This document shows positions 9,901-61,982 of a stretch of DNA of 64,000 bases, in pieces. Within the stretch, counting starts at the first letter, position 1. Every line of letters starts with the position of its first letter. Source of the DNA: Bugula neritina (Eukaryota > Animalia > Bryozoa); the NCBI GenBank assembly GCA_964035545.1, contig OZ037770.1, positions 3,442,662 through 3,506,661 on the forward strand, read 5' to 3'. The translations under genes and the position numbers were made by a program. Below the pieces are notes generated by a model. The model was given only the letters and a program-made list of their open reading frames with translations, was not told the origin of the DNA and did not search any database.

Positions 9901-12715
9901 GAGGCATCTCCCTCGCAAAGGGGCGGACATTTTGTATGCCTGCGTGAGTAACAGAAACATAAATAATATTCTATTTCCTACATAACGCTGTAAACTTTAG
10001 CAAATGCTGCACAATAGATATTCAAAAAAATTTTCAACTGTATTCTCCGAAACACAAACATTTTTTGAATGACAAACTTAGTCAACTTGCTGAGCATAAA
10101 TTATGCAAGTTTTCATGGAAGAATTGACAGATTGGTTCTTACTTCGTGAGAATGGTAGAGTTTGGTGATGGAAGGACTAGTGCAAGGTTTGACACCCAGT
10201 TTCAACACATCAATATCTCGGTTGTGCTCATCCATGTATTGCAGACTGTCGGTCACGTCTTGGTGGTGCTTCCTGGGAACTGAAATAAGTTAGTAAAGGT
10301 CTAAGTTGAACTGAGGGAATTGTTGAATAGAAACTTAGCCTAATAATCACTCTGAACTCTCACCAAGGTCATATTGCGAAAAGGGATCAGAATTATTCTA
10401 TAAGCAGCTCCTAGTTGGGGGTGACTGAGTACAGTATTTGAATTGGGGTTTGGGTTGGAAGTTTGAATCCCAACTACAAATTCAAGACCTCAAACTACTG
10501 CACCAAGTCACCTCTGATTTGGTGCTGCTTATAGATAATTTCACCGTATCAAGTCCTTCAGCTTACTTAAAAGAACTTTTACCTTGCGATATTGTACAAC
10601 TGTAGCTATTTTAATAAGTTTTAATTTATTAAACTATCATTCAATCCTATCACACAACAAGTAAAGTGAGTCTAGTTAAAATGAAACTATTTAAAAACAT
10701 GAAAACTATTGCTTAGCTAGCTCAGTTACTTTAAGTCAAAACAGTCATCATTTTGATTATAAGACTGAGAGATATTGTATAAAACATGCGACATTAACAT
10801 CGCTCAGTAGATAGTACGCCTGGCCAGTAGCCTGAATATTTGCTTACTAAACTATGCCTTTGCAGTGAGGTTCAGAGAAATAAGCTTGGTACAGTATAAT
10901 ATTTAGCAAAAAGTTGCTGACCAAACAGCCGATTATATTCTAAGACCTTGACCTTCGTAAGTAATATACTGCTATGATAACACTACTATATCAACGCCAG
11001 TTAGGACTTAGCTAAAGGTTTAGATAATGACTGGAAGTGAACATTTGAAATGCAGTTACCTTCATTAATATGTAACAATTTCTTTCAACAGAATAAATTA
11101 GGCTACAAAACCCAATTGTGGCCCTTTCTTGTAAAGTGCTGCAGAAAAAACATGGATGTTGCACAGTGGAAATTCTGCAGAGTGATAAAAACAACTCACC
11201 GGAATTAAGCTTTATCCTGTTAGGAACCACCTGGTATTCACTCAAGAGAGCCATCACGTCGGAACGGTTGCTCTCATGAGCTACATCCACTGCTGTTGAA
11301 CTGTTTCTGTCTTGAATGCCCAGCAGCTCTGAACGTTGACCAGGTGATAAAATGTCCAGCATAAATCGCAACGTTTCCACATGGCCCCCGGAAGAAGCTA
11401 GTTTCACAGGCGTTGAGCCGTTTTTATTTTGCATACAGAGTAATGCGAATAAGTCATTATCCAATAACTTATCAGTTATACATTTCATGATCTGGGTCAA
11501 GCCCTTTCTAGCAACCCAGTGCACAGAAGTAAAGTTGTTTGAATCGCGTCCAGAGATGAGGTTTTTAAAGTCAGCCTCTGTGACAGAATCAGCAATGGTT
11601 CTGAATGCTGTCACATGATTATTAGTAACTGCCCAGTAAATGGCCGTCACTCTATTTTTTTCATGCATTTTTAATAGTTTCAACCAATCAGCTGCTGGCA
11701 AATTATCTATAAAGCATTTTATGACCTGTGAACTCCCTTTGTGAGCTGCCCAATGAACAGGAGTGAATCGATCTTTGTCTGGGAGTACCAGGAGTTTGTA
11801 CAGGTCATGAGGAGATAACATTTTAGTGATGGAGTTCATGATTTCAATGCGGTTCTCATGCGCTGCCCAGTGAATAGTTGTGAAGCCATTTATATCCTGA
11901 ACTGTGAGCAGCTCAAAGAGGGTAGACACAGGAAGCGCTCGCACTAGACACTTAAAGATTTCCGTGTGACCATCGTGCACTGCCCAGTGCAGCGCTGTAA
12001 ATTTATTCTTATCTTGAACTGTTAACAGTTTGCATATATCAGAAGGGGGCAACGCTTCAGCAATGGATTTAATAATCTTCAAATTGCCTTTGTGTGTTGC
12101 CCAGTACAATGGCGTGATACCACTTTTGTCAGGTATCAGCAGCAGCTTGTATCGTTCCTCCTTGGGAACGGCATTCAACAAATTTTTTACCATGTCGACA
12201 TAGCATCTACTCACTGCCCAATGCATGGCAGTGAATCTGTTATTATCTTGCATAGATAAGAGTTTACCTACTTCATTTGCTGGCACATTGCATATCAAGC
12301 ACTTGATAGTTTCATGGTTACCTTTGTGAGCAGCCCAATGTACAGCTGTAAAGCCAGCGTTATCCGGTATTTTCAACAGCTGAAAAAGAGAGGAACGGGG
12401 AATCAATTGGAGCAGACCTTCTACTACAGTTGCATGGCCGTTGTGGGCTGCCCAGTGCAAAGGAGTAAATCCACTGGATTCCTGAGAGGCAAGAAAATGA
12501 AACCAGGAGCTGTTGGGCAGGGATTCCCGTATTGCTTTAACGATATCCGTACGACCAATGCTTGCAGCTGCACACACTACCTTTACTTTTTCTGACCGAT
12601 TATCGTGCCTTTTCAACAATGAAATCAAATCACTGTAAGGCATTTCTTCCACTTCCTTATCGAATGCTGCTTCAATATTGCAAGCATTTTGTGTATTTGA
12701 TTGACTATTCGACAT
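6901..12715 (-). CDS. Ankyrin-repeat / caspase (peptidase C14A) fusion protein, ~815 aa, 7 coding exons
   Basis: Exons 12715-11200, 10279-10143, 9939-9748, 9330-9111, 8547-8419, 8064-7955, 7044-6901; all GT-AG and phase-compatible, total 2448 nt. Exon 1 holds about 11 ankyrin repeats. Caspase motifs: RGRCLIINN, REGSDVD, IMTHG (catalytic His), GKPKIIIIQACAG (catalytic Cys), SMRHSLQGSWFI, RKFYLFP. Confidence 0.9.
7078..7309. mobile_element. hAT-type non-autonomous element
   Basis: Termini CAAGGGTAGACAA / TTGCCCACCCCTG; 8-bp flanking duplication GACTAGCA / GACTAGTA. Confidence 0.65.
7509..7905. mobile_element. ~390-bp palindromic MITE family member
   Basis: Long inverted arms (..TTTAGCTGCTAA.. 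/ ..TTAGCAGCTAAA..). Related copies at ~39155-39511, ~49084-49290 and ~52380-52560. Confidence 0.7.
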
Positions 12716-17598: not shown

Positions 17599-20500
17599 AT
17601 GGACGAAGGAGTAACTGCAATGGAAGGAGGTGAGCAGAACATTATTATAGGCCCTCTCGGAGCTGGAGAGGAGGTATATAGGAACATGTTGGAGGTTCCC
17701 GTGTTCACAGGCTGCGAGGATATTGAACAATTCGTTCAAGAATTCCGTGAAACTGCCGCCATTGCAAGATGGCCGCCAAGAGTAACCCTTACAAAACTGC
17801 GGATGGCACTGACGGGAGAAGCCAAGCCGTACGGGTGGAAGCCTAGCATAAACGGGATCATTGCTACACTACGGGCCCGTTTTGGCATGCCCGTTGCCGT
17901 CGCCAAGTCCAGACTGCGAGGATTACTCCGCAAGACATGTACACCGCTTCCTGACCACGCCACTCTGGTGCAGAGACTGGCACGGACCGCGTATAGCGAT
18001 CTGCCAGAAACACACAGACGGCACTACACATTCGAAGCCTTTGTACAGTCTCTCAATTCTTTGGACTTCCATCACCAGTTGCAAGCCAAGGGAGTGACCA
18101 CAATTGAGGCTGCAATCCAAGAGAACAAGGCCTACGCTGGAGCCGAACGACTCTATAAGACGGAGGAGGCCACGCCCCAGCCCTCTAGGGAACCAGACCA
18201 TCCGGTCCGCATAGCTGCCGCGACCACTAAAACCCCCATAGAGACGGAGATAAGCCGCTTGATGACTAGACTGGGACAATTGGTGGCGACGATAACATAC
18301 AACCACTCAAGGAAGAGTAAGAGGACGGCAGCAAAACCCCCCAGACCCATGATGCGACGCTGGGAAAGCGGCAGTCAGGGACACCGCCACCTGAGCGGCC
18401 CACGATTCAAACGGCAGCAGAAACCACAACCTCCCCGGAGACCCCCAGAGCTCCGCGGACACACACAGAGAGAAAAACGGGGTGGGTGTCGCCAGGAGCC
18501 CGTACGGGCCAAGCGACACACCCCCCGTCAATGGCAAACACCTCGCCGTACCAGCCAACCAGGTCGACCACGAGACCCCTTCTCTCTGCCTCTCACCAAC
18601 CGCTTCAGTCCGTTACCAGTAATGGAACAGACCAGCGAGGCCCCTCAGGGCATCGGGGAGGATCAGAACACCTCCCCGCAAGGAAACTCTCACCGGCCCC
18701 GCAAACCGCGGAACAAACGGGCACAGCCCCGTTCGGCCGAGACCGAGCACGCTGGGGGAATACGGGTACAACCTCACGGAGGCAGCTACTTCTTGCCAGG
18801 GAAGGTGGCCGGTAAAGCTGTCACCTTCCTGTTAGACTCCGGGTGTACCACTAATATCCTCAGCCGTCGGGTCTTCGACACCCTCCCTCTCAAGGAGAGG
18901 GGAGCCTTAGCTCCCTATACCGGGGAACCGGGCACCCTAGCTGACGGGTCACGGATTCCTTTCTACGGTATCATAGAATTGGCTGGGCGCGTCCGCGACC
19001 AAGCCATTCAGGAAACCTTCGTCATCAGCCCACTGGAGGAAGATGCCATACTAGGGATGCCGTTCTTGAAGAGACACGGGTGCCATATTGACTTTAGCAA
19101 GTCAGCCATGCTAATGGGCGGCAAAGAGCTCACCTGTGTCGACAAGTTCGGTCGTCCTCTAGCGGGAGGTGTGCAGGTAGTACGCAACTGTACTATACCC
19201 GGCCGCTCCCGGGCTACCGTTCACTGCAGAGTGAACAATAGCCAACTCTCGGGGCTAGGGGTTGTCGAAGGTGCGCACTCTAGAATCCAACTCGCCAGCA
19301 GTCTTAACCGGCTGACTGACCGAGGAGAGATCTTGGTGCAGTGTGTCAACCCTTTCTCCGAAGCGGTACAATTACCGTCAGGATCCATGCTGGGTCGCTT
19401 CCACTCCATCCAGGAGGGGGATGTAGGGCCGTCGCTGGGAGCTGCGACGGAAGGTCCCCAACAGAGCCCGTCAGTTAGGGGGGGGACCGTCCCATCACAC
19501 GTCAAAGAGCTATACCAGGCAGCGTGTAACGGCTGCACGGGCAACGTGGAACGCCAGACTATGGCTCAGTTGCTACGTGATTATAGCGACGTGTTCAGCA
19601 GTGGGGACCATGACGTCGGCCTGACCACGGCCGTCCGTCATGAGATACCGCTGGCTGCAGGGACTACCCCTATTCGGCAGCCCACCAGGAGGCTGGGACC
19701 AGAGAAGGAAAAAGAGGTAAGCCAACAAGTCCGGGATCTTTTGGACCGCGGCCTCATCGAACCAGCGCATAGCGCGTGGAGTTCACCGGTCGTTCTGGTC
19801 CGAAAGAAAGACGGCAGTTGGCGGTTCTGTGTGGATTATCGCAAGCTCAATAGCGTGACCATACAGGACGCCTACCCCTTACCCAGGATCGACGAATCTC
19901 TGGACGCCTTAGCCGGCAGCAAGTACTTTAGTACGCTAGACTTGTTGAGCGGCTATTGGCAGGTCCCCCTCAGCCCAGACGCCCAGGAGAAGGCGGCGTT
20001 CATCACGCGGGACGGCTTATGGAAGTGGAAAGTCCTCCCCTTCGGACTGACTTCCGCCCCCGCCACGTTCCAGCGGCTCATGGAACAGGTCCTCAGTGGA
20101 CTCCACTGGAAGACACTGCTAGTGTACCTCGACGACGTCATCGTGATCTCCCCAGACTTTCAGACGCACGTCAGTCGTCTGCGGGAGGTCTTCGATCGAC
20201 TCCGAGGCGCCAATCTGAAGCTCAAACCCTCCAAGTGCGCTCTCTTGCAGCCAGAGGTGAAGTACCTGGGGCACATCGTCGGCCGCCACGGCGTGGCGAC
20301 GGATCCTGAAAAGGTACGAGCTATAGAAGATTGGGTAACCCCCCAGGATTTGACCGGGCTACGGGCTTTCCTGGGGCTGGTAGGGTATTACAGGCAATAC
20401 ATACCAGACTTTGCGGGGGTAGCGCAGCCGTTAAACCGGCTCACCGCAAAGGGGGTGACCTGGCAGTGGACTCCCGTCGAACAGAGAGCGTTCGACTGCC

Positions 20501-22695
20501 TCAAAGGCCGCCTGCTGGAGGCCCCTATCCTGGCCTATCCAGACCCTGCCCTGGAGTACATCCTCGATACTGACGCCAGTGACCAAAATGTCGGCGCTGT
20601 GCTGTCCCAGGTGCAGGAGGGCCGCGAAGTAGTCGTGGCCTACTACAGTAAGTCTCTCTCGCCCACTGAACGAAATTACTGCACTACCCGAAAGGAATTG
20701 CTGGCAGTAATCAAGTCGGTGAAGCATTTCAGACCTTATCTATACGGCAGGAAGTTCCGCTTGCGGACCGACCACGCCTCCTTGATTTGGTTATGTAAGA
20801 GAGCAGAACCGTCCAGCCAAGTCGCCCGATGGCTCGAGGTCCTGGCCGAGTTCTCTTACCGGATCGAACACCGACCCGGTAAGAAACACGGCAATGCTGA
20901 TGGACTGAGCCGGCGACCGGACGAGGGGTGTAAACAGTGCCTCAACATCGAGAAGAGGGACGGAGGTCCCCCAAAATCCGAGTTGAGAGCACTGAACCAC
21001 TCTGAAACGGAGTATGACTGGGACCAGGGTCAACTCCTACAGAAGGCCTCTACGCCCCCGGAGGCTATCCAACGCCTCCGTGCCAATCCTGTCTTGGCTG
21101 ATAACGTTAGAGAGCTACGAAGACTCCAGGAGGACCTCCCTGGAGTGGTAGCCGACGTATATCGTGCCAAAAAGGAGGGGCGACGACCCAGTGAAGAACA
21201 ACTGCGGCAGGGATGCACCGAGTTACGGTTGTACTGCCAACGTTGGGATTCCCTGCGGATCGGGCCAGATGGTCTGCTGACCATCACAGTGGCTGCTCAC
21301 AACAACCAATACGGCAGACAAAGGGTGATCTGCCCAGCCGCCATACGCCGGGGGTTAGTATGGGACACCCACAAGCAAGCCCACGCCGGGGTGAGCAGGG
21401 TTCTCTCCAAGTTACAACTCCGGTGGTACTGGCCCGGCATGGAGCGTGAGGTGCGGCGTAGAGTCAAACAATGCGAAATCTGCCAGGCCAGCAAGCATGG
21501 CCGTCTCCCTGGTGAAGCGGGACGGCGTCGGCTATATGCTGGAAGGCCATGGCAGGTGGTAGCTATCGACCTAGTCGGACCCATGCCCGTCACCCCCAGG
21601 GGAAACAGCTGGATCCTAGTATTAACCGACCACTTTACACGGTGGGCGGATGCCCTGGCTATTCCAGATGCGTCCGCCCCCACGGTGGCCAGGGTGCTGG
21701 ACCAAAATGTATTCTGCTATCTTGGACTACCTGAGCAAATACATTCGGACCAGGGGGCTCAATTCCAGTCCCAACTGTTGAGCGACCTCTGCCGCCTCTG
21801 GGGAGTGAACCAAAGCAGGACCACCCCGTACCATCCTCAGGGCAACGGGGTGGTGGAACGCAACAATCGCATGTTGGGCGATGCACTGCGCAGCCTGCTC
21901 CTCGGCCGGGGTCAGGAGGAGTGGGATACGGTACTACCGCAAGTCATGCGGGCCTACCGTAGTACACCACACACCAGTACGGGGGAAACCCCTAACCTCC
22001 TGATGCTCGGTCGAGAGACGCGAGTGCCTGACCACCTCACATACCACATCCCAGAGCAGGACTATACCATCCACGAGTATGCCAGTAAATTGATAGAGGA
22101 CCTGAGGGCCGCACACGAAATACTGCGGGCAAAGCAGTGGCAGGTACGGCGAGAGGACTCTCAGGAACCACCCCTCTATCGAACTGGGGACTGGGTGTGG
22201 ATGATCAACTACCGTAGGCGTCGAGGACAAGCGGCTAAGCTCCAGCCTAAGTTTGTGGGACCCTACGTAGTAGTTGAAGCTATGCCCAATCATACGTACA
22301 AGTTGGAGCGATCTGGACAGGTCTCTGTCCAGAACGAAGCCCGCTTGAAACCGTATTGGGCTAGCCCAGGAGCAGCAGGAGCAGCCCCCCCGTTGTTGGA
22401 GCCCAGGAGGCAGACAGTAACGCGTGGGCGGCAACGGCATGGACCAGAATACGAAGTGGTTGTGCCGCGGGGAGAGGACTTAGTGAGGCAGGAGACGCCA
22501 CTCCCACCAACGGAAGTGCGCCCACCGCCCCCAGTACCAAGTCTACCCCCACCACTTCCGGTTCCGCATCCGCGTCCGGAAGTGCAAAACCCCCCGTGGG
22601 AGGGGCTCCATCTGGAGACAACAGCAGAGAGGGGAACACCACCACCAACGGCGGGCCAGAAACACCACAGGTGGAGCAAAATAGCCCACCAGTGA
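17599..22695 (+). CDS. Gag-Pol polyprotein (gag, aspartic protease, RT, RNase H, integrase), 1698 aa
   Basis: LLDSGC protease; LPFGL and YLDD RT; TDAS..ELLA RNase H; HKQAH..CEIC and DDE integrase; GPY motif. Confidence 0.97.
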   Translation: MDEGVTAMEGGEQNIIIGPLGAGEEVYRNMLEVPVFTGCEDIEQFVQEFRETAAIARWPPRVTLTKLRMALTGEAKPYGWKPSINGIIATLRARFGMPVAVAKSRLRGLLRKTCTPLPDHATLVQRLARTAYSDLPETHRRHYTFEAFVQSLNSLDFHHQLQAKGVTTIEAAIQENKAYAGAERLYKTEEATPQPSREPDHPVRIAAATTKTPIETEISRLMTRLGQLVATITYNHSRKSKRTAAKPPRPMMRRWESGSQGHRHLSGPRFKRQQKPQPPRRPPELRGHTQREKRGGCRQEPVRAKRHTPRQWQTPRRTSQPGRPRDPFSLPLTNRFSPLPVMEQTSEAPQGIGEDQNTSPQGNSHRPRKPRNKRAQPRSAETEHAGGIRVQPHGGSYFLPGKVAGKAVTFLLDSGCTTNILSRRVFDTLPLKERGALAPYTGEPGTLADGSRIPFYGIIELAGRVRDQAIQETFVISPLEEDAILGMPFLKRHGCHIDFSKSAMLMGGKELTCVDKFGRPLAGGVQVVRNCTIPGRSRATVHCRVNNSQLSGLGVVEGAHSRIQLASSLNRLTDRGEILVQCVNPFSEAVQLPSGSMLGRFHSIQEGDVGPSLGAATEGPQQSPSVRGGTVPSHVKELYQAACNGCTGNVERQTMAQLLRDYSDVFSSGDHDVGLTTAVRHEIPLAAGTTPIRQPTRRLGPEKEKEVSQQVRDLLDRGLIEPAHSAWSSPVVLVRKKDGSWRFCVDYRKLNSVTIQDAYPLPRIDESLDALAGSKYFSTLDLLSGYWQVPLSPDAQEKAAFITRDGLWKWKVLPFGLTSAPATFQRLMEQVLSGLHWKTLLVYLDDVIVISPDFQTHVSRLREVFDRLRGANLKLKPSKCALLQPEVKYLGHIVGRHGVATDPEKVRAIEDWVTPQDLTGLRAFLGLVGYYRQYIPDFAGVAQPLNRLTAKGVTWQWTPVEQRAFDCLKGRLLEAPILAYPDPALEYILDTDASDQNVGAVLSQVQEGREVVVAYYSKSLSPTERNYCTTRKELLAVIKSVKHFRPYLYGRKFRLRTDHASLIWLCKRAEPSSQVARWLEVLAEFSYRIEHRPGKKHGNADGLSRRPDEGCKQCLNIEKRDGGPPKSELRALNHSETEYDWDQGQLLQKASTPPEAIQRLRANPVLADNVRELRRLQEDLPGVVADVYRAKKEGRRPSEEQLRQGCTELRLYCQRWDSLRIGPDGLLTITVAAHNNQYGRQRVICPAAIRRGLVWDTHKQAHAGVSRVLSKLQLRWYWPGMEREVRRRVKQCEICQASKHGRLPGEAGRRRLYAGRPWQVVAIDLVGPMPVTPRGNSWILVLTDHFTRWADALAIPDASAPTVARVLDQNVFCYLGLPEQIHSDQGAQFQSQLLSDLCRLWGVNQSRTTPYHPQGNGVVERNNRMLGDALRSLLLGRGQEEWDTVLPQVMRAYRSTPHTSTGETPNLLMLGRETRVPDHLTYHIPEQDYTIHEYASKLIEDLRAAHEILRAKQWQVRREDSQEPPLYRTGDWVWMINYRRRRGQAAKLQPKFVGPYVVVEAMPNHTYKLERSGQVSVQNEARLKPYWASPGAAGAAPPLLEPRRQTVTRGRQRHGPEYEVVVPRGEDLVRQETPLPPTEVRPPPPVPSLPPPLPVPHPRPEVQNPPWEGLHLETTAERGTPPPTAGQKHHRWSKIAHQ

Positions 22696-23057
22696 GTACG
22701 CCGCCCCAACCAACAGCTATAACTCCCCCTCCAGCTGATGCGTCACCTCCCCTGGAACGGGGACAGCGTACTAGACAACCCCCAGCATACCTTAAAGATT
22801 TCATATGTGACCGTGTTACAAACGGCAGTTATGAAAGTCTAGCTGGGCGCCGTACGGAAAGACTGGCAACAAAGCGTGGGAGTTGTGAACACCACGGAAA
22901 TCTCAACTTTTGCGAAGGCGGAGTAGTAAACAAAACTACTACGCCCGAGGCAAATAGTTCCAGCCGTGCGCAACAACCACGCTGCCCAGTCTTTTCGTAC
23001 GCTGACATTGTCAAGGGAAGACGCATTCAAACTCAATCCACGGACATCCAAGCTTGA
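22596..23057 (+). other. Probable frameshifted C-terminal tail of Pol
   Basis: Contains RGQRTRQPPAYLKDF, a typical gypsy Pol terminal motif. One extra C in the C-run at ~22590-22595 would join it to the main ORF. Confidence 0.6.
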
Positions 23058-23122
23058 ACGCTGAGTATGATTACAAATACCGGGTTCTCAGGTAAGCTTG
23101 CTCTGAGCTAACATTTCCACTC

Positions 23123-24211
23123 ATGGAAACCAGTCTACCATCAGTCAGTTCTGATTTAATCGCCTTGATTGAATCACAACTACTGGGGACTGAGTCCTAC
23201 GTGAAAGGCGACGAGAACATAAAGATGGCCGACGATCTACTAGATCTGGAGCTTGACACTATGTCTCTCTGTCAGTCTACACGACACGACTCAGTCCCGC
23301 GAGTGCTATCTGAAAAGATGTATGACTCTCAGACTAGTAACAGTCGGTTGTCATCAGAATTATGGTGTAAAGATCATATCCGATCTAACAGTAATTCTGC
23401 TCTTTTAGATACCGCTCTCTCTCCTCTATCTGGTGACATGCCGTCACTAGAAATGGCTTGGAACGAGGAACCCGTTCCCACTACTCTTCCGGAGGCACTC
23501 CTACAACAATCATGCTGGGTTACAACAGATACGGAAACACTGATACGAGAGCACAAAGGAGATGACCAATGCACCACCTGCCGTTTATGCCAGCTTCACT
23601 TCACTACCCCACGAAGACTCCGAGTTCATATTCCCCAACATTACTTCACCACCTTTTGTCCCTGTGGTGAATATAGTTACCACAGGGACTACATCCTCCG
23701 TCACCAACGAACCATGGGATGCTATATTGGACACCTATTCGAAGTCGACGAACCCTCCTTTCCACAATTCCTTAATCTCATCCGACCGTTCATATCAGAC
23801 CCAGTTCGATATGAACGGCTGCGCCAGGAGTTCCCCGCACCCAGGACCATCACACAGGGACCCTGCCCTAAACCACCCGGATATAGGAAACCCCGCATAT
23901 CCCATTCCTCACCCCCCGCACGCACAGTGCCTCGCCCCGACTCTATACCAAGAGTCGTGTTACGACGCATCGATATACCACAGCGATGGCGTCCCTCCCC
24001 CCCTGTCTCCCCAAGGCCGTCTCGTAAGCGGCGTTGGCCATCTTCATCCCCCAATCGACACTCTGCCCCCGCCAGGAATCTAGGCGAGGCAGAAGAGCGG
24101 ATACGAGAATTAGAGAAAGAGGTGCAAAGACTGACACCGAGAATCTCCGCCGCCGCATCAGAACTCCGGGCCCTCTCTGCCTCTGTAGCCCGAATGAAAG
24201 GAAGTGCTTGA
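23123..24211 (+). CDS. Accessory ORF of the gypsy element: acidic N-terminus, C2H2 plus C2HC-like zinc fingers, Pro/Arg-rich linker, C-terminal coiled coil (362 aa)
   Basis: CRLCQLHFTTPRRLRVHIPQH fits C-x2-C-x3-F-x5-L-x2-H-x3-H; followed by CPCGEYSYHRDYILRHQRTMGC, RPSRKRR and LGEAEERIRELEKEVQRL. Protein-level homologue at 62225-63323. Confidence 0.85.
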   Translation: METSLPSVSSDLIALIESQLLGTESYVKGDENIKMADDLLDLELDTMSLCQSTRHDSVPRVLSEKMYDSQTSNSRLSSELWCKDHIRSNSNSALLDTALSPLSGDMPSLEMAWNEEPVPTTLPEALLQQSCWVTTDTETLIREHKGDDQCTTCRLCQLHFTTPRRLRVHIPQHYFTTFCPCGEYSYHRDYILRHQRTMGCYIGHLFEVDEPSFPQFLNLIRPFISDPVRYERLRQEFPAPRTITQGPCPKPPGYRKPRISHSSPPARTVPRPDSIPRVVLRRIDIPQRWRPSPPVSPRPSRKRRWPSSSPNRHSAPARNLGEAEERIRELEKEVQRLTPRISAAASELRALSASVARMKGSA

Positions 24212-59274: not shown

Positions 59275-60380
59275 CTGATTTGATACTTACAGTTATTTAA
59301 GACATTTATTAACTGTTTCATGTTTTATTATTATTGAAAACGGAACTAAATATATTTGGACATCAATAAGTTAGGTATCATGGTATTTTAGAAAGTGTCT
59401 AATGAAATATATATTATAATATAAATTTAAAAAATGGGCAGCAAAACTATAAACACCGTGTTTGAGACAATTCCTATAGCTCTAGGGAAGAAATCAGTTG
59501 AAGTTTGAAATTTATATACCTAACCAAGTAATTATTGTGTTTACTTTTATCTCAGGTTTCTGTAAAATTATATAAGCATTATTTCAATAAATTTCATTTC
59601 ATTAGCTTGGCTTTGCAATGCACTGCAGGTGCTAGGCAACATCTCTAGTACAGTGTTTTCACTACCCATCGGTACACTGTATGCATGACACCTATTATAT
59701 ATATATAGCCTGTCACACCTCAAGTTGCAACTCATGTTATATAACTATATATAAAGCTGTTATAACAATAATCATCTCTATGGTGATAAAAATGTAATTA
59801 TATTCAAAAGGAGTTAATTAGTTGGTAAACATTTTACCTTATTCATAAATTTATCATAGAAGTGTTAGACTATTAATTAGTTAGCTCCCTAAGAAGGTTA
59901 TAGCATGATACCGTTGGTTGCCTGCATTACATGCATGCAGCATGCTATAGATATGCAGAGTTTCATTAAAGTTTTTATTTTAGCATTATTTATATGATTA
60001 TTTGAAGTATTTCTATAATTATTTGAAGTATTTCTATGATTATTTGAAGTATTTCTATGATTATTTGAGGTATTGAAACAGATAAAAAAGCTGTGGTATT
60101 TTACAGATGTAGCGACCATTAACACTGAACGGACTAATAGATGCCGTAAAAATCAATTTATATGAAAGTCTAATTGCAGTCTTTATGTGCATGATAGCAG
60201 AATTAGCTGTACATAAGCTGTGCCATACTAAATACAGAAAAGCATAGAATATAGTTAGTGTAGCTATGAAACTCTAATTAAGTTATAATGATGCGTGCTT
60301 GTTGTTTACATATTAAAAAATTGTATCAAAAGCTTTTATTACTCATAGAATGTTCCCAAAGTAACCAAGGTTGCTGACAT

Positions 60381-60473: not shown

Positions 60474-60476
<3 letters not shown>

Positions 60477-60520
60477 AAATGAGTGTTTATAAAACGTTAC
60501 TAGAGTGCTCTATAGAAATA

Positions 60521-60568
60521 AATCTGACGAGTGCACATCGTTCTTGTGTACGAAACTACTAGTAATAA
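60521..60568 (+). ncRNA. Minimal hammerhead ribozyme motif, degenerate stem I
   Basis: CTGACGA-GTGCACA(TCGTTCT)TGTGTAC-GAAA-CTACTAG-TA: intact core, 7-bp stem II, short stem III, GUA site; stem I only 2 bp. Confidence 0.6.
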
Positions 60569-60602
60569 ATGCCATTATATTAATCAAATCTCATTTTATT
60601 TC

Positions 60603-60633
<31 letters not shown>

Positions 60634-60850
60634 CTCAATCTGTGGACAGCAGCTGTTTCGGGATTTGTTTTACTAAAGCATATTTAAAAGGTGTGTAAAC
60701 TCCAGCCAGAGTGCTGAAGTGACTCTATAAGGGGTCACCTAGGAGTCACGAGCATTGCAAAATGCTAGCAGCTTGAGTTTGTGACCATGGTGAGAGTGCT
60801 CAATCATTTAATGTCATTACTGAGCATCAAATGAGAGCGTAATATCTCAA

Positions 60851-60897
60851 TCTGTGGACAGCAGCTGTTTCGGGATTTGTCCCCTCATCAGCACAGA
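60851..60897 (-). ncRNA. Type I hammerhead ribozyme, complete
   Basis: Minus strand UCUGUG-CUGAUGA-GGGGACAAAUCCC-GAAA-CAGCUGCUG-UC-CACAGA: 6-bp stem I, full core, stems II and III, GUC cleavage site (cut between 60857 and 60856). Confidence 0.92.
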
Positions 60898-61121
60898 ACA
60901 GAGTACCCTGGCCCACACCTTCGCAATAGTAAAACTTATAGTTTTACTAAAGCATATTTAAAAGGTGTGTAAACTTAAGCCAGTGTGCTCAAGTGACTCT
61001 AGGGGTCACCTAGGAGTCACGAGCATTGCAAAATGCTAGCAGCTTGAGTTTGTGACCATGGTGAGAGTGCTCAATCATTTAATGTCATTACTGAGCATCA
61101 AATGAGAGCGTAATATCTCAA

Positions 61122-61168
61122 TTTGTGGACAGCAGCTGTTTCGGGATTTGTCCCCTCATCAGCACAGA
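61122..61168 (-). ncRNA. Type I hammerhead ribozyme, complete (one stem I mismatch)
   Basis: Same as 60851-60897 with 3' arm CACAAA; GUC site at 61130-61128. Confidence 0.9.
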
Positions 61169-61372
61169 ACAGAGTACCCTGGCCCACACCTTCGCAATAG
61201 TAAAACTTATAGTTTTACTGAAGCATATTTAAAAGGTGTGTAAACTCAAGCCAGAGTGCTCAAGTGACTCTATAAGGGGTCACCTAGGAGTCACGAGCAT
61301 TGCAAAATGCTAGCAGCTTGAGTTTGTGACCATGGTGAGAGTGCTCAATCATTTAATGTCATTACTGAGCAT

Positions 61373-61420
<48 letters not shown>

Positions 61421-61424
<4 letters not shown>

Positions 61425-61670
61425 GTGGGAAGATTGTTTACAGTTACATTGTGTGTCGTTTAGTTTAGTAGCGGTAGTAAGAATGTGTGCAGTTTTAAGT
61501 TTGTGTTGGTTTGAGCCATCAATAATATTTTTCATGTTGGGCATGCATGAATAACTAATTTTTGTGGTTTTCCTATTAACAATTTTACTTAGTTGGTTGG
61601 ATGGTGAAAAGCATTTGTCAATGATTTGAAGAAATTTCTTCCCTATTTTGGTTTTTACCGTTGAACTAAA
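61421..61670 (-). pseudogene. Penelope-like element ORF fragment (RT to GIY-YIG linker)
   Basis: FSSTVKTKIGKKFLQIIDKCFSPSNQLSKIVNRKTTKISYSCMPNMKNII..CNCKQSSHCL, broken by (TA)n. Confidence 0.8.
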
Positions 61671-61982
61671 CTTATTTGTGCTGTTTAGCTTTTAATAATT
61701 GAATGATAAAAATTAAATGTGAAGTTTGAAAGGCTTTGTAAGCTTTAGGAACACCACACAAGCACTTTTGTTGAGATGAATTATAATATAATACTACCAA
61801 TAGCTTTGGGCGGATTTGGTTTTGTATTATCAAACAACACAAGTACAAACTCAAGCTCGCTTAAAATATTCAAACAGCATTAGCTATTATAGACATTAAA
61901 AGTATATAGGTATAGATTATAATTTATAAGACATATTGTTATACAAATAGACAGCAAAAGCTTAAAGAGATTATTTGTTGAA

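Follow-up and report, generated by a model that had tools for sequence, protein, structure and literature searches.

A tandem hammerhead array in the bryozoan Bugula neritina is probably an old retrozyme insertion of the Penelope-like type

A hammerhead-bearing tandem array in the genome of Bugula neritina is likely one old insertion of a non-autonomous, non-coding element of the animal non-LTR retrozyme kind, placed into a (TA)n tract by the type of insertion that characterizes Hydra-clade Penelope-like elements (PLEs). The array lies in a 64,000-nt stretch of DNA, here called the window (C6:3442662-3506661 of the 216-Mb assembly, contig OZ037770.1), and coordinates without a contig prefix are those of the window. 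Several features by which animal non-LTR retrozymes are recognized are present: the tandem units are non-coding and 271 nt long, with a GC content of 42.8%, they carry a type I hammerhead that spans the boundary of the unit, and they are flanked by (TA)n only, with no LTR, PBS or PPT.

RESULTS AND DISCUSSION

Anatomy of the array

A sequence-only reading of the window had described a minus-strand tandem hammerhead array at this position, and this description holds. The 271-nt units run head to tail on the minus strand from 61377 to 60634, and Tandem Repeats Finder reports 2.6 copies with a period of 271 and 96% matches at 60667-61377, between (AT)n tracts at 61376-61420 and 60608-60633. The CTGATGA..CGAAAC core occurs twice on the minus strand (60867-60891 and 61138-61162), compared with 0.01 occurrences expected from shuffles. 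The parts of the insertion, in the order of its RNA, and the neighboring fragment are as follows.

61378..61420, no strand: (TA)n tract on the 5' side of the insertion (RNA sense, minus strand); Tandem Repeats Finder gives 61376-61420, period 2
61128..61377, minus strand: unit A, 5'-truncated, unit positions 25-271, ending at C17 of hammerhead HHR1 (BLAST and alignment)
61117..61174, minus strand: HHR1, cut site 61128/61127; helix I 5' strand (61163-61174), then CUGAUGA (61156-61162), helix II, GAAA and helix III
61117-61127, minus strand: helix I 3' strand of HHR1, with a private G>A at 61123 that leaves a C.A mismatch
60857..61127, minus strand: unit B, the full 271 nt between both GUC^C sites, which is the predicted RNA
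61069..61109, minus strand: bulged hairpin, unit positions 19-59, present in MFE folds; candidate reverse transcriptase recognition element
60846..60903, minus strand: HHR2, cut site 60857/60856, of family-typical sequence
60645..60856, minus strand: unit C, with a ~60-nt deletion (junction near 60667/60666) that removed the 5' half of HHR3
60798-60838, minus strand: unit C copy of the bulged hairpin
60645-60666, minus strand: HHR3 remnant (half of helix II, GAAA, helix III and GUC)
60630..60644, minus strand: constant 3' tail CACAGATTGAGATAT that leads into (TA)n; insertions throughout the family end here, and it is the putative start of cDNA synthesis
60608..60633, no strand: (TA)13 tract on the 3' side, common to the retrozyme and to a Penelope-like tail on the opposite strand
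60474..60607, plus strand: 134-nt terminal fragment of a Penelope-like family, not part of the retrozyme, with a CUGACGA core at 60524-60530 and a GUA^ site at 60564/60565

The C17 residues fall at 61128 and 60857, and the two GUC^C sites are therefore 271 nt apart, in agreement with the cut sites and the spacing that had been read from the sequence. The same reading had counted two complete type I hammerheads and a third that had lost half of its motif by deletion. Both HHR1 and HHR2 do have the core, the GUC and three helices, but helix I of HHR1 contains the C.A mismatch, and so the count of two stands with that qualification. The partial loss of the third was borne out, since unit C lacks unit positions 188-247 and with them the 5' strand of helix I, CUGAUGA and half of helix II. 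Only HHR2 is family-typical at this locus, helix I of HHR1 being weakened and HHR3 deleted.

Other properties of the locus concern its age. The G>A change at 61123 converts HHR1 to a CACAAA state that is present in 1 of 43 copies. Among the 23 arrays sampled, this one is the most diverged (2.5% from the other arrays, versus 0.6 to 1.7% for the rest), and its own units differ from each other at 4 of 248 positions. Its first unit begins at unit position 25 (query positions 25-271 in a BLAST search with the unit). The studied copy is an old, partly disabled member, and its value is as an illustration of the family.

Upstream of the array, another high-copy repeat (61434-61731) ends at the (TA)n tract; its depth in DNA runs is comparable to that of the retrozyme, and no hammerhead was seen in it. 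The window also contains a 21-nt tandem repeat (59987-60074; 4.2 copies, 94% matches), a long retroelement frame of 1698 aa that is followed by another ORF (17599-24211) and, on the minus strand, an ankyrin-repeat frame of 567 aa (11012-12715).

Structure of the unit and of its hammerhead

The spacer had been described as lacking a useful ORF, and in a trimer of the unit the longest stop-free runs are indeed 36 to 45 codons, with no open frame exceeding 45 codons. The unit is strongly structured: its computed fold has a z score of -6.4 in linear form and -6.0 in circular form, with 64% of bases paired, and the inverted repeats that had been pointed out in the spacer form the long hairpins of this fold.

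HHR1 and HHR2 both have the core of a type I hammerhead, namely CUGAUGA, GAAA, the pairs G10.1-C11.1 and A15.1-U16.1 and a GUH triplet, and this core is nearly invariant across the retrozyme subfamilies. Helix I is open and consists of 6 bp, an internal loop and then 3 bp formed by CUC/GAG, which is the extension of stem I past an internal loop that the earlier reading had proposed. Helices II and III have 4 bp each; the former is GGGG/UCCC and includes one G.U pair, and the latter has a 3-nt loop. The 11 nt of helix III are self-complementary at 10 positions, and their computed energy is -0.5 kcal/mol as a hairpin versus -14.1 kcal/mol as a duplex of two copies. By these calculations, helix III is predicted to be marginal as a hairpin and, being near-palindromic, to follow the dimer-type hammerhead design, which is known from amphibian retrozymes and from PLE hammerheads (PMC7229834).

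Searches with Infernal and the Rfam models, which had been suggested as a check of the hammerhead, brought no model to threshold. No hammerhead match was obtained at the gathering score, or at an E value of ≤10 on 1 kb, and a genome-wide search with RF00163 found no member of the retrozyme family. When 81 nt were submitted, the best two matches were to hammerhead models, RAGATH-1-hammerhead with 15.2 bits (threshold 56) and Hammerhead_3 with 12.8 bits (threshold 48), and both of these subthreshold matches were in the expected register. Covariation in the helices was absent within the retrozyme family, whose variants are decayed copies. Between the retrozyme and five PLE families of the same genome, helices I and II differ in sequence and appear to stay paired, as parsed by script.

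A dispersed family with a fixed 3' end

The 35-nt hammerhead has 569 matches in the genome at ≤3 mismatches, compared with 0 for the reversed control. A BLAST search with the 271-nt unit, which had been suggested as a measure of copy number, gave 680 first-look candidates, and these lie on all large contigs. Degenerate hammerhead patterns with CTGATGAGH had almost no matches beyond the family, while the GGH and GGGH patterns matched older retrozyme subfamilies only. These older subfamilies exist at ~92% and ~79% identity.

The ends of the insertions follow a strict pattern. In 23/23 distinct arrays, the 3' end is identical and consists of GUC, CACAGATTGAG and ATAT leading into (TA)n; it lies 11 to 15 nt past the GUC site and immediately follows the 3' strand of helix I. 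The 5' ends are scattered over unit positions 3 to 230; almost all are at an A or T, and most abut (TA)n. Both flanks are (TA)n in all 23 arrays, which bears out the proposal that the element inserts into (TA)n. The arrays contain from <1 to ~4 units, and mean divergence is 0.43% within arrays and 1.17% between them, with four arrays having identical units. The family had been called young, and values of ~0.4% within and ~1.2% between arrays agree with this.

Given that the 3' end is fixed, that the 5' ends vary and that identity goes by array, the copies point to target-primed reverse transcription from one start point, with early termination. Such a pattern is the signature that would be expected of arrays made at insertion. 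Just 3' of the point where insertions end sits the bulged hairpin at unit positions 19-59, in which pair 26-50 has changed from U-A to C-G between the young subfamily and the subfamily at 92% identity. This change lends slight support to the hairpin as a candidate recognition element for the reverse transcriptase.

A chimera of the retrozyme and a spliced host mRNA

One insertion on another part of C6 (C6:8536384-8537645; L069:985-2246) joins the retrozyme to a host sequence. At this locus, ~1.1 kb of intronless coding sequence, rich in tryptophan-containing motifs, continues at its 3' side into the terminal 45 nt of the retrozyme, which begin at helix II, and then into (TA)n; the inverted end of an older retrozyme subfamily lies on its other side. 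Seven colinear pieces of the 1.1 kb match a gene at C1:20169152-20172542 at 95 to 100% identity, and gaps separate them in the gene. Since these exon pieces are colinear and are joined without introns, the insert is a copy of a spliced host mRNA. The simplest reading is that the cDNA was initiated at the site normally used in the retrozyme and changed template 45 nt later. Read in this way, the chimera shows that reverse transcription starts at the tail site of the retrozyme, and copies of the retrozyme are made through RNA.

These observations bear on whether the units are simply a satellite DNA that was spread by unequal crossing-over and has a hammerhead-like motif by chance or as a relic. 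The array is a tandem repeat, as a satellite would be, and Rfam does not call the motif. Nevertheless, the family consists of hundreds of short arrays dispersed over all large contigs with one fixed end, its hammerhead is complete and conserved in the core, the GUC site and all three helices, and a chimera with a spliced mRNA exists, so that we regard a satellite origin as extremely improbable.

Penelope-like elements of the genome share the hammerhead design and the target

The fragment next to the array (60474-60607) belongs to a family with a CUGACGA-type hammerhead, which came to light in a search for further hammerheads next to (TA)n. At its 3' end, the fragment runs up to (TA)13 and faces the 3' end of the retrozyme. 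The first 52 nt of this fragment are inverted in other copies, where they lie ~13 nt beyond the tail. Longer copies of this neighboring family are inverted twins of 1 to 2.4 kb between (TA)n tracts, and the ORF of one of them (L071) encodes reverse transcriptase motifs that include YRDD, a CxCX5C linker and a GIY-YIG endonuclease. The Hydra clade has been defined as short elements with a single ORF, a C-terminal GIY-YIG domain, a CxCX5C linker, a canonical hammerhead and insertion into (TA)n (Craig et al., PMC8557442, section 11). Since the ORF, the short size, the hammerhead and the (TA)n target match this diagnosis, the neighboring family is assigned by its features to the Hydra-clade PLEs.

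The PLE ORF has 869 candidate matches that fall into at least five families, with 44 to 52% identity between classes, and its homologues are ~700-aa proteins of corals and of another bryozoan. Several PLE frames are open over ~714 aa, which suggests recent activity. Among profile searches, the Pfam GIY-YIG profile (PF01541) identified one host gene and no PLE, and the RVT_1 profile returned LINE and LTR elements only.

Five PLE tails were read, and each has the order ORF, hammerhead with a near-palindromic helix III, tail and (TA)n. PLE copies keep 15 to 110 nt past the hammerhead site, and in family A some copies stop ~15 nt beyond the cut site, immediately past helix I, like the retrozyme. 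The design of helices I and III is likewise that of the retrozyme in all five families. The sequences themselves are another matter. A local alignment of the retrozyme with the family A tail scored 17, against a shuffle mean of 19.8; global alignments with the five tails were not significant; and the exact hammerhead of the retrozyme is absent from all five. Only one local block, with family C, reached a z score of 3.95 among 10 tests, and it is not relied on.

The sequence-only reading had the family mobilized by a PLE reverse transcriptase. In favor of this, Hydra-clade PLEs share the hammerhead design and the (TA)n target with the retrozyme, and one of them adjoins the array; against it, this association is circumstantial and does not extend to similarity of the tail sequences. 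We consider Hydra-clade PLEs to be, on circumstantial grounds, the likely helpers of the retrozyme.

A different helper would be a microsatellite-targeting LINE, of which the retrozyme would be a SINE-like parasite. Fixed 3' ends and 5' truncation are signatures of LINEs too, and LINEs are abundant in the genome. However, no (TA)n run was present in the flanks of the 8 sampled loci of the best-scoring LINE families in the RVT_1 search, and tandem copies, inverted twin ends and a hammerhead next to the start site are what the PLEs of this genome have. A LINE helper is therefore very unlikely, and we retain the PLEs in this role.

The retrozyme is separate from PLE coding elements

The earlier reading held that units always attached to full PLE ORFs would be a pseudo-LTR and not an independent retrozyme, and the surroundings of the arrays show no such attachment. 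None of the ~29 arrays examined adjoins a PLE ORF or has one in its flanks, and the long frames near them are host genes with ankyrin, TPR or LIM domains. In addition, no place was found at which foreign sequence follows the hairpin (unit positions 19-59), and, in a search for a larger element sharing the hammerhead, those hammerheads that had a different upstream sequence proved to be 5'-truncated retrozyme copies. Since PLE ORFs are missing from the flanks and the hairpin is never detached, the retrozyme is a separate, non-autonomous family.

At one locus (C6:7462778-7464614; L072:479-2315), a (TA)6 tract separates a 75-nt retrozyme end of an older subfamily from a 5'-truncated PLE ORF. We considered this end as an upstream pseudo-LTR of the PLE and rejected it, as the retrozyme end and the PLE ORF are separate insertions in one (TA)6.

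The units could in principle be pseudo-LTR fragments of an autonomous Penelope-like element, given that PLE insertions are partial tandems with hammerheads and a short 3' extension (PMC8557442) and that a retrozyme fragment does adjoin a PLE ORF at L072. This explanation is very unlikely, however: the pair at L072 merely shares a (TA)6 tract, the ~29 arrays have no PLE ORF beside them, the hairpin nowhere continues into other sequence, and the five PLE tails do not contain the exact hammerhead.

A proposed route of insertion

On the reading of the array as a retrozyme inserted in the PLE manner, the following steps can be envisaged. Transcripts of arrays would be cut at GUC^C by the hammerhead. 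Cleavage would probably take place in pairs, because helix III is near-palindromic. The 271-nt product would be closed by a host RNA ligase, by analogy with other animal retrozymes, in which circular RNAs and closure by a ligase have been shown (PMC7229834). The enzymes of Hydra-clade PLEs would then act on the retrozyme RNA in trans: their GIY-YIG endonuclease and reverse transcriptase would nick (TA)n, the freed TA end would anneal to the AUAU beside helix I of the RNA, and the cDNA would run through at least one unit, by rolling-circle copying of a circular monomer or along an uncleaved multimer. Finally, the 5' end would be joined via TA microhomology.

In a more specific form, which we rate as possible but short of probable, cDNA synthesis would start at the internal AUAU after helix I and just upstream of the conserved hairpin, and the template would be a 271-nt circle that is copied for several rounds, so that arrays would be born at insertion and not by satellite expansion. 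The hammerhead and the hairpin would together serve as a docking signal for the enzymes of Hydra-clade PLEs, both in cis and in trans, and the same enzyme would make processed pseudogenes by template switching.

Alternatively, insertion may be of the PLE type with long, uncleaved multimeric array transcripts as the template, in which case the cDNA would start internally and the hammerhead would have no role in making the template. Since the 3' end of arrays lies beyond the cut site, the RNA that was copied must have been uncut there, an argument that fits a circle and an uncleaved multimer equally, and the identity of units within arrays fits both models alike. The uncleaved multimer gains from the marginal helix III hairpin, which may cause single hammerheads to cut poorly, from the PLE copies that themselves keep 15 to 110 nt past the hammerhead site, and from an RNA library contig that crosses the cut site. 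It is weakened by the shortness of the source arrays (1 to 4 units), by the circular retrozyme RNAs documented in other animals (PMC7229834), and by the consideration that, on a read-through transcript, starting at one internal point would call for the same recognition signal in any case. We rate the uncleaved multimer as possible, though short of probable; the wider reading of a PLE-type insertion of a retrozyme is common to both templates.

Relationship to known elements

The family resembles the metazoan non-LTR retrozymes described from coral, mussel and axolotl (Cervera and de la Pena 2020, PMC7229834) in having short non-coding tandem units (170 to 400 nt in that group), a type I hammerhead, low GC and dispersed arrays from dimers upward. 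The amphibian members of that group have a weak helix III and are cut as dimers, and helix III of the bryozoan retrozyme is similar. Unlike those retrozymes, the present family has a bryozoan host and very short arrays and is known from sequence alone, and it has a fixed 3' end, truncation at the 5' end and flanks that are strictly (TA)n, which that study does not describe.

With the Hydra-clade PLEs (Craig et al. 2021, PMC8557442), the retrozyme shares the (TA)n target and a type I hammerhead near the 3' end, as well as partial tandems that extend slightly beyond the unit boundary, twin ends in inverted orientation and truncation at the 5' end. Targeting of (TA)n has been published for both Hydra and Naiad PLEs (PMC8557442). 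In contrast to PLEs, the retrozyme has no ORF, its unit is only 271 nt, and it has no significant similarity to the tails tested.

Retrozymes have also been proposed to derive from PLEs (Li, Clavereau, Pollet 2026, bioRxiv 10.64898/2026.07.22.740005). The thesis for vertebrates, as here, is that retrozymes co-occur with PLEs and depend on them. The vertebrate study builds on Neptune and Poseidon PLEs and on pseudo-LTR similarity in Xenopus and proposes that arrays were amplified locally, whereas in B. neritina the likely partners belong to the Hydra clade, sequence similarity is lacking and the arrays look as if they were made at insertion. The plant LTR retrozymes (PMC4918200) are comparable in that they are non-autonomous and that hammerheads bound a non-coding RNA, circularization being a feature of the plant elements; they have type III hammerheads, LTRs, a PBS, a PPT and Gypsy machinery, none of which is found in the bryozoan retrozyme.

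A literature search found no paper on hammerhead elements in bryozoans. The earlier description of the family as probably undescribed is thus sound for bryozoans, as far as searchable papers go, but does not extend to the kind of element: animal non-LTR retrozymes and their derivation from PLEs are already published, and the kind is not new. What the family adds is an unusually clean insertion anatomy in a small genome. Copying starts at a single point next to the ribozyme, the units of a newly made array are identical, the targets are strictly (TA)n, and in the chimera the reverse transcriptase was caught as it changed template from the retrozyme to an mRNA of the host. How retrozyme RNA is selected and copied, and whether arrays have a rolling-circle origin, thereby become directly testable.

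Retrozyme sequences in sequencing runs

The RNA and DNA run data consisted of assembled contigs (Logan), which carry no read ends, strand or level. In one oligo-dT metatranscriptome, contigs of the family occur at a depth of 3 to 9, including the one that crosses the cut site, and carry-over of DNA could explain them. No contigs of this library were found on the unique flanks of the studied array. As evidence from RNA the oligo-dT contigs are weak, showing that the family is present in an RNA library. In other runs, of uncertain kind, the family is present at high depth. It also occurs in run X16, labeled with a second organism code (organism B), and in an RNA-Seq sample labeled as a symbiont metagenome, and from its presence in these two the family may be common to close relatives.
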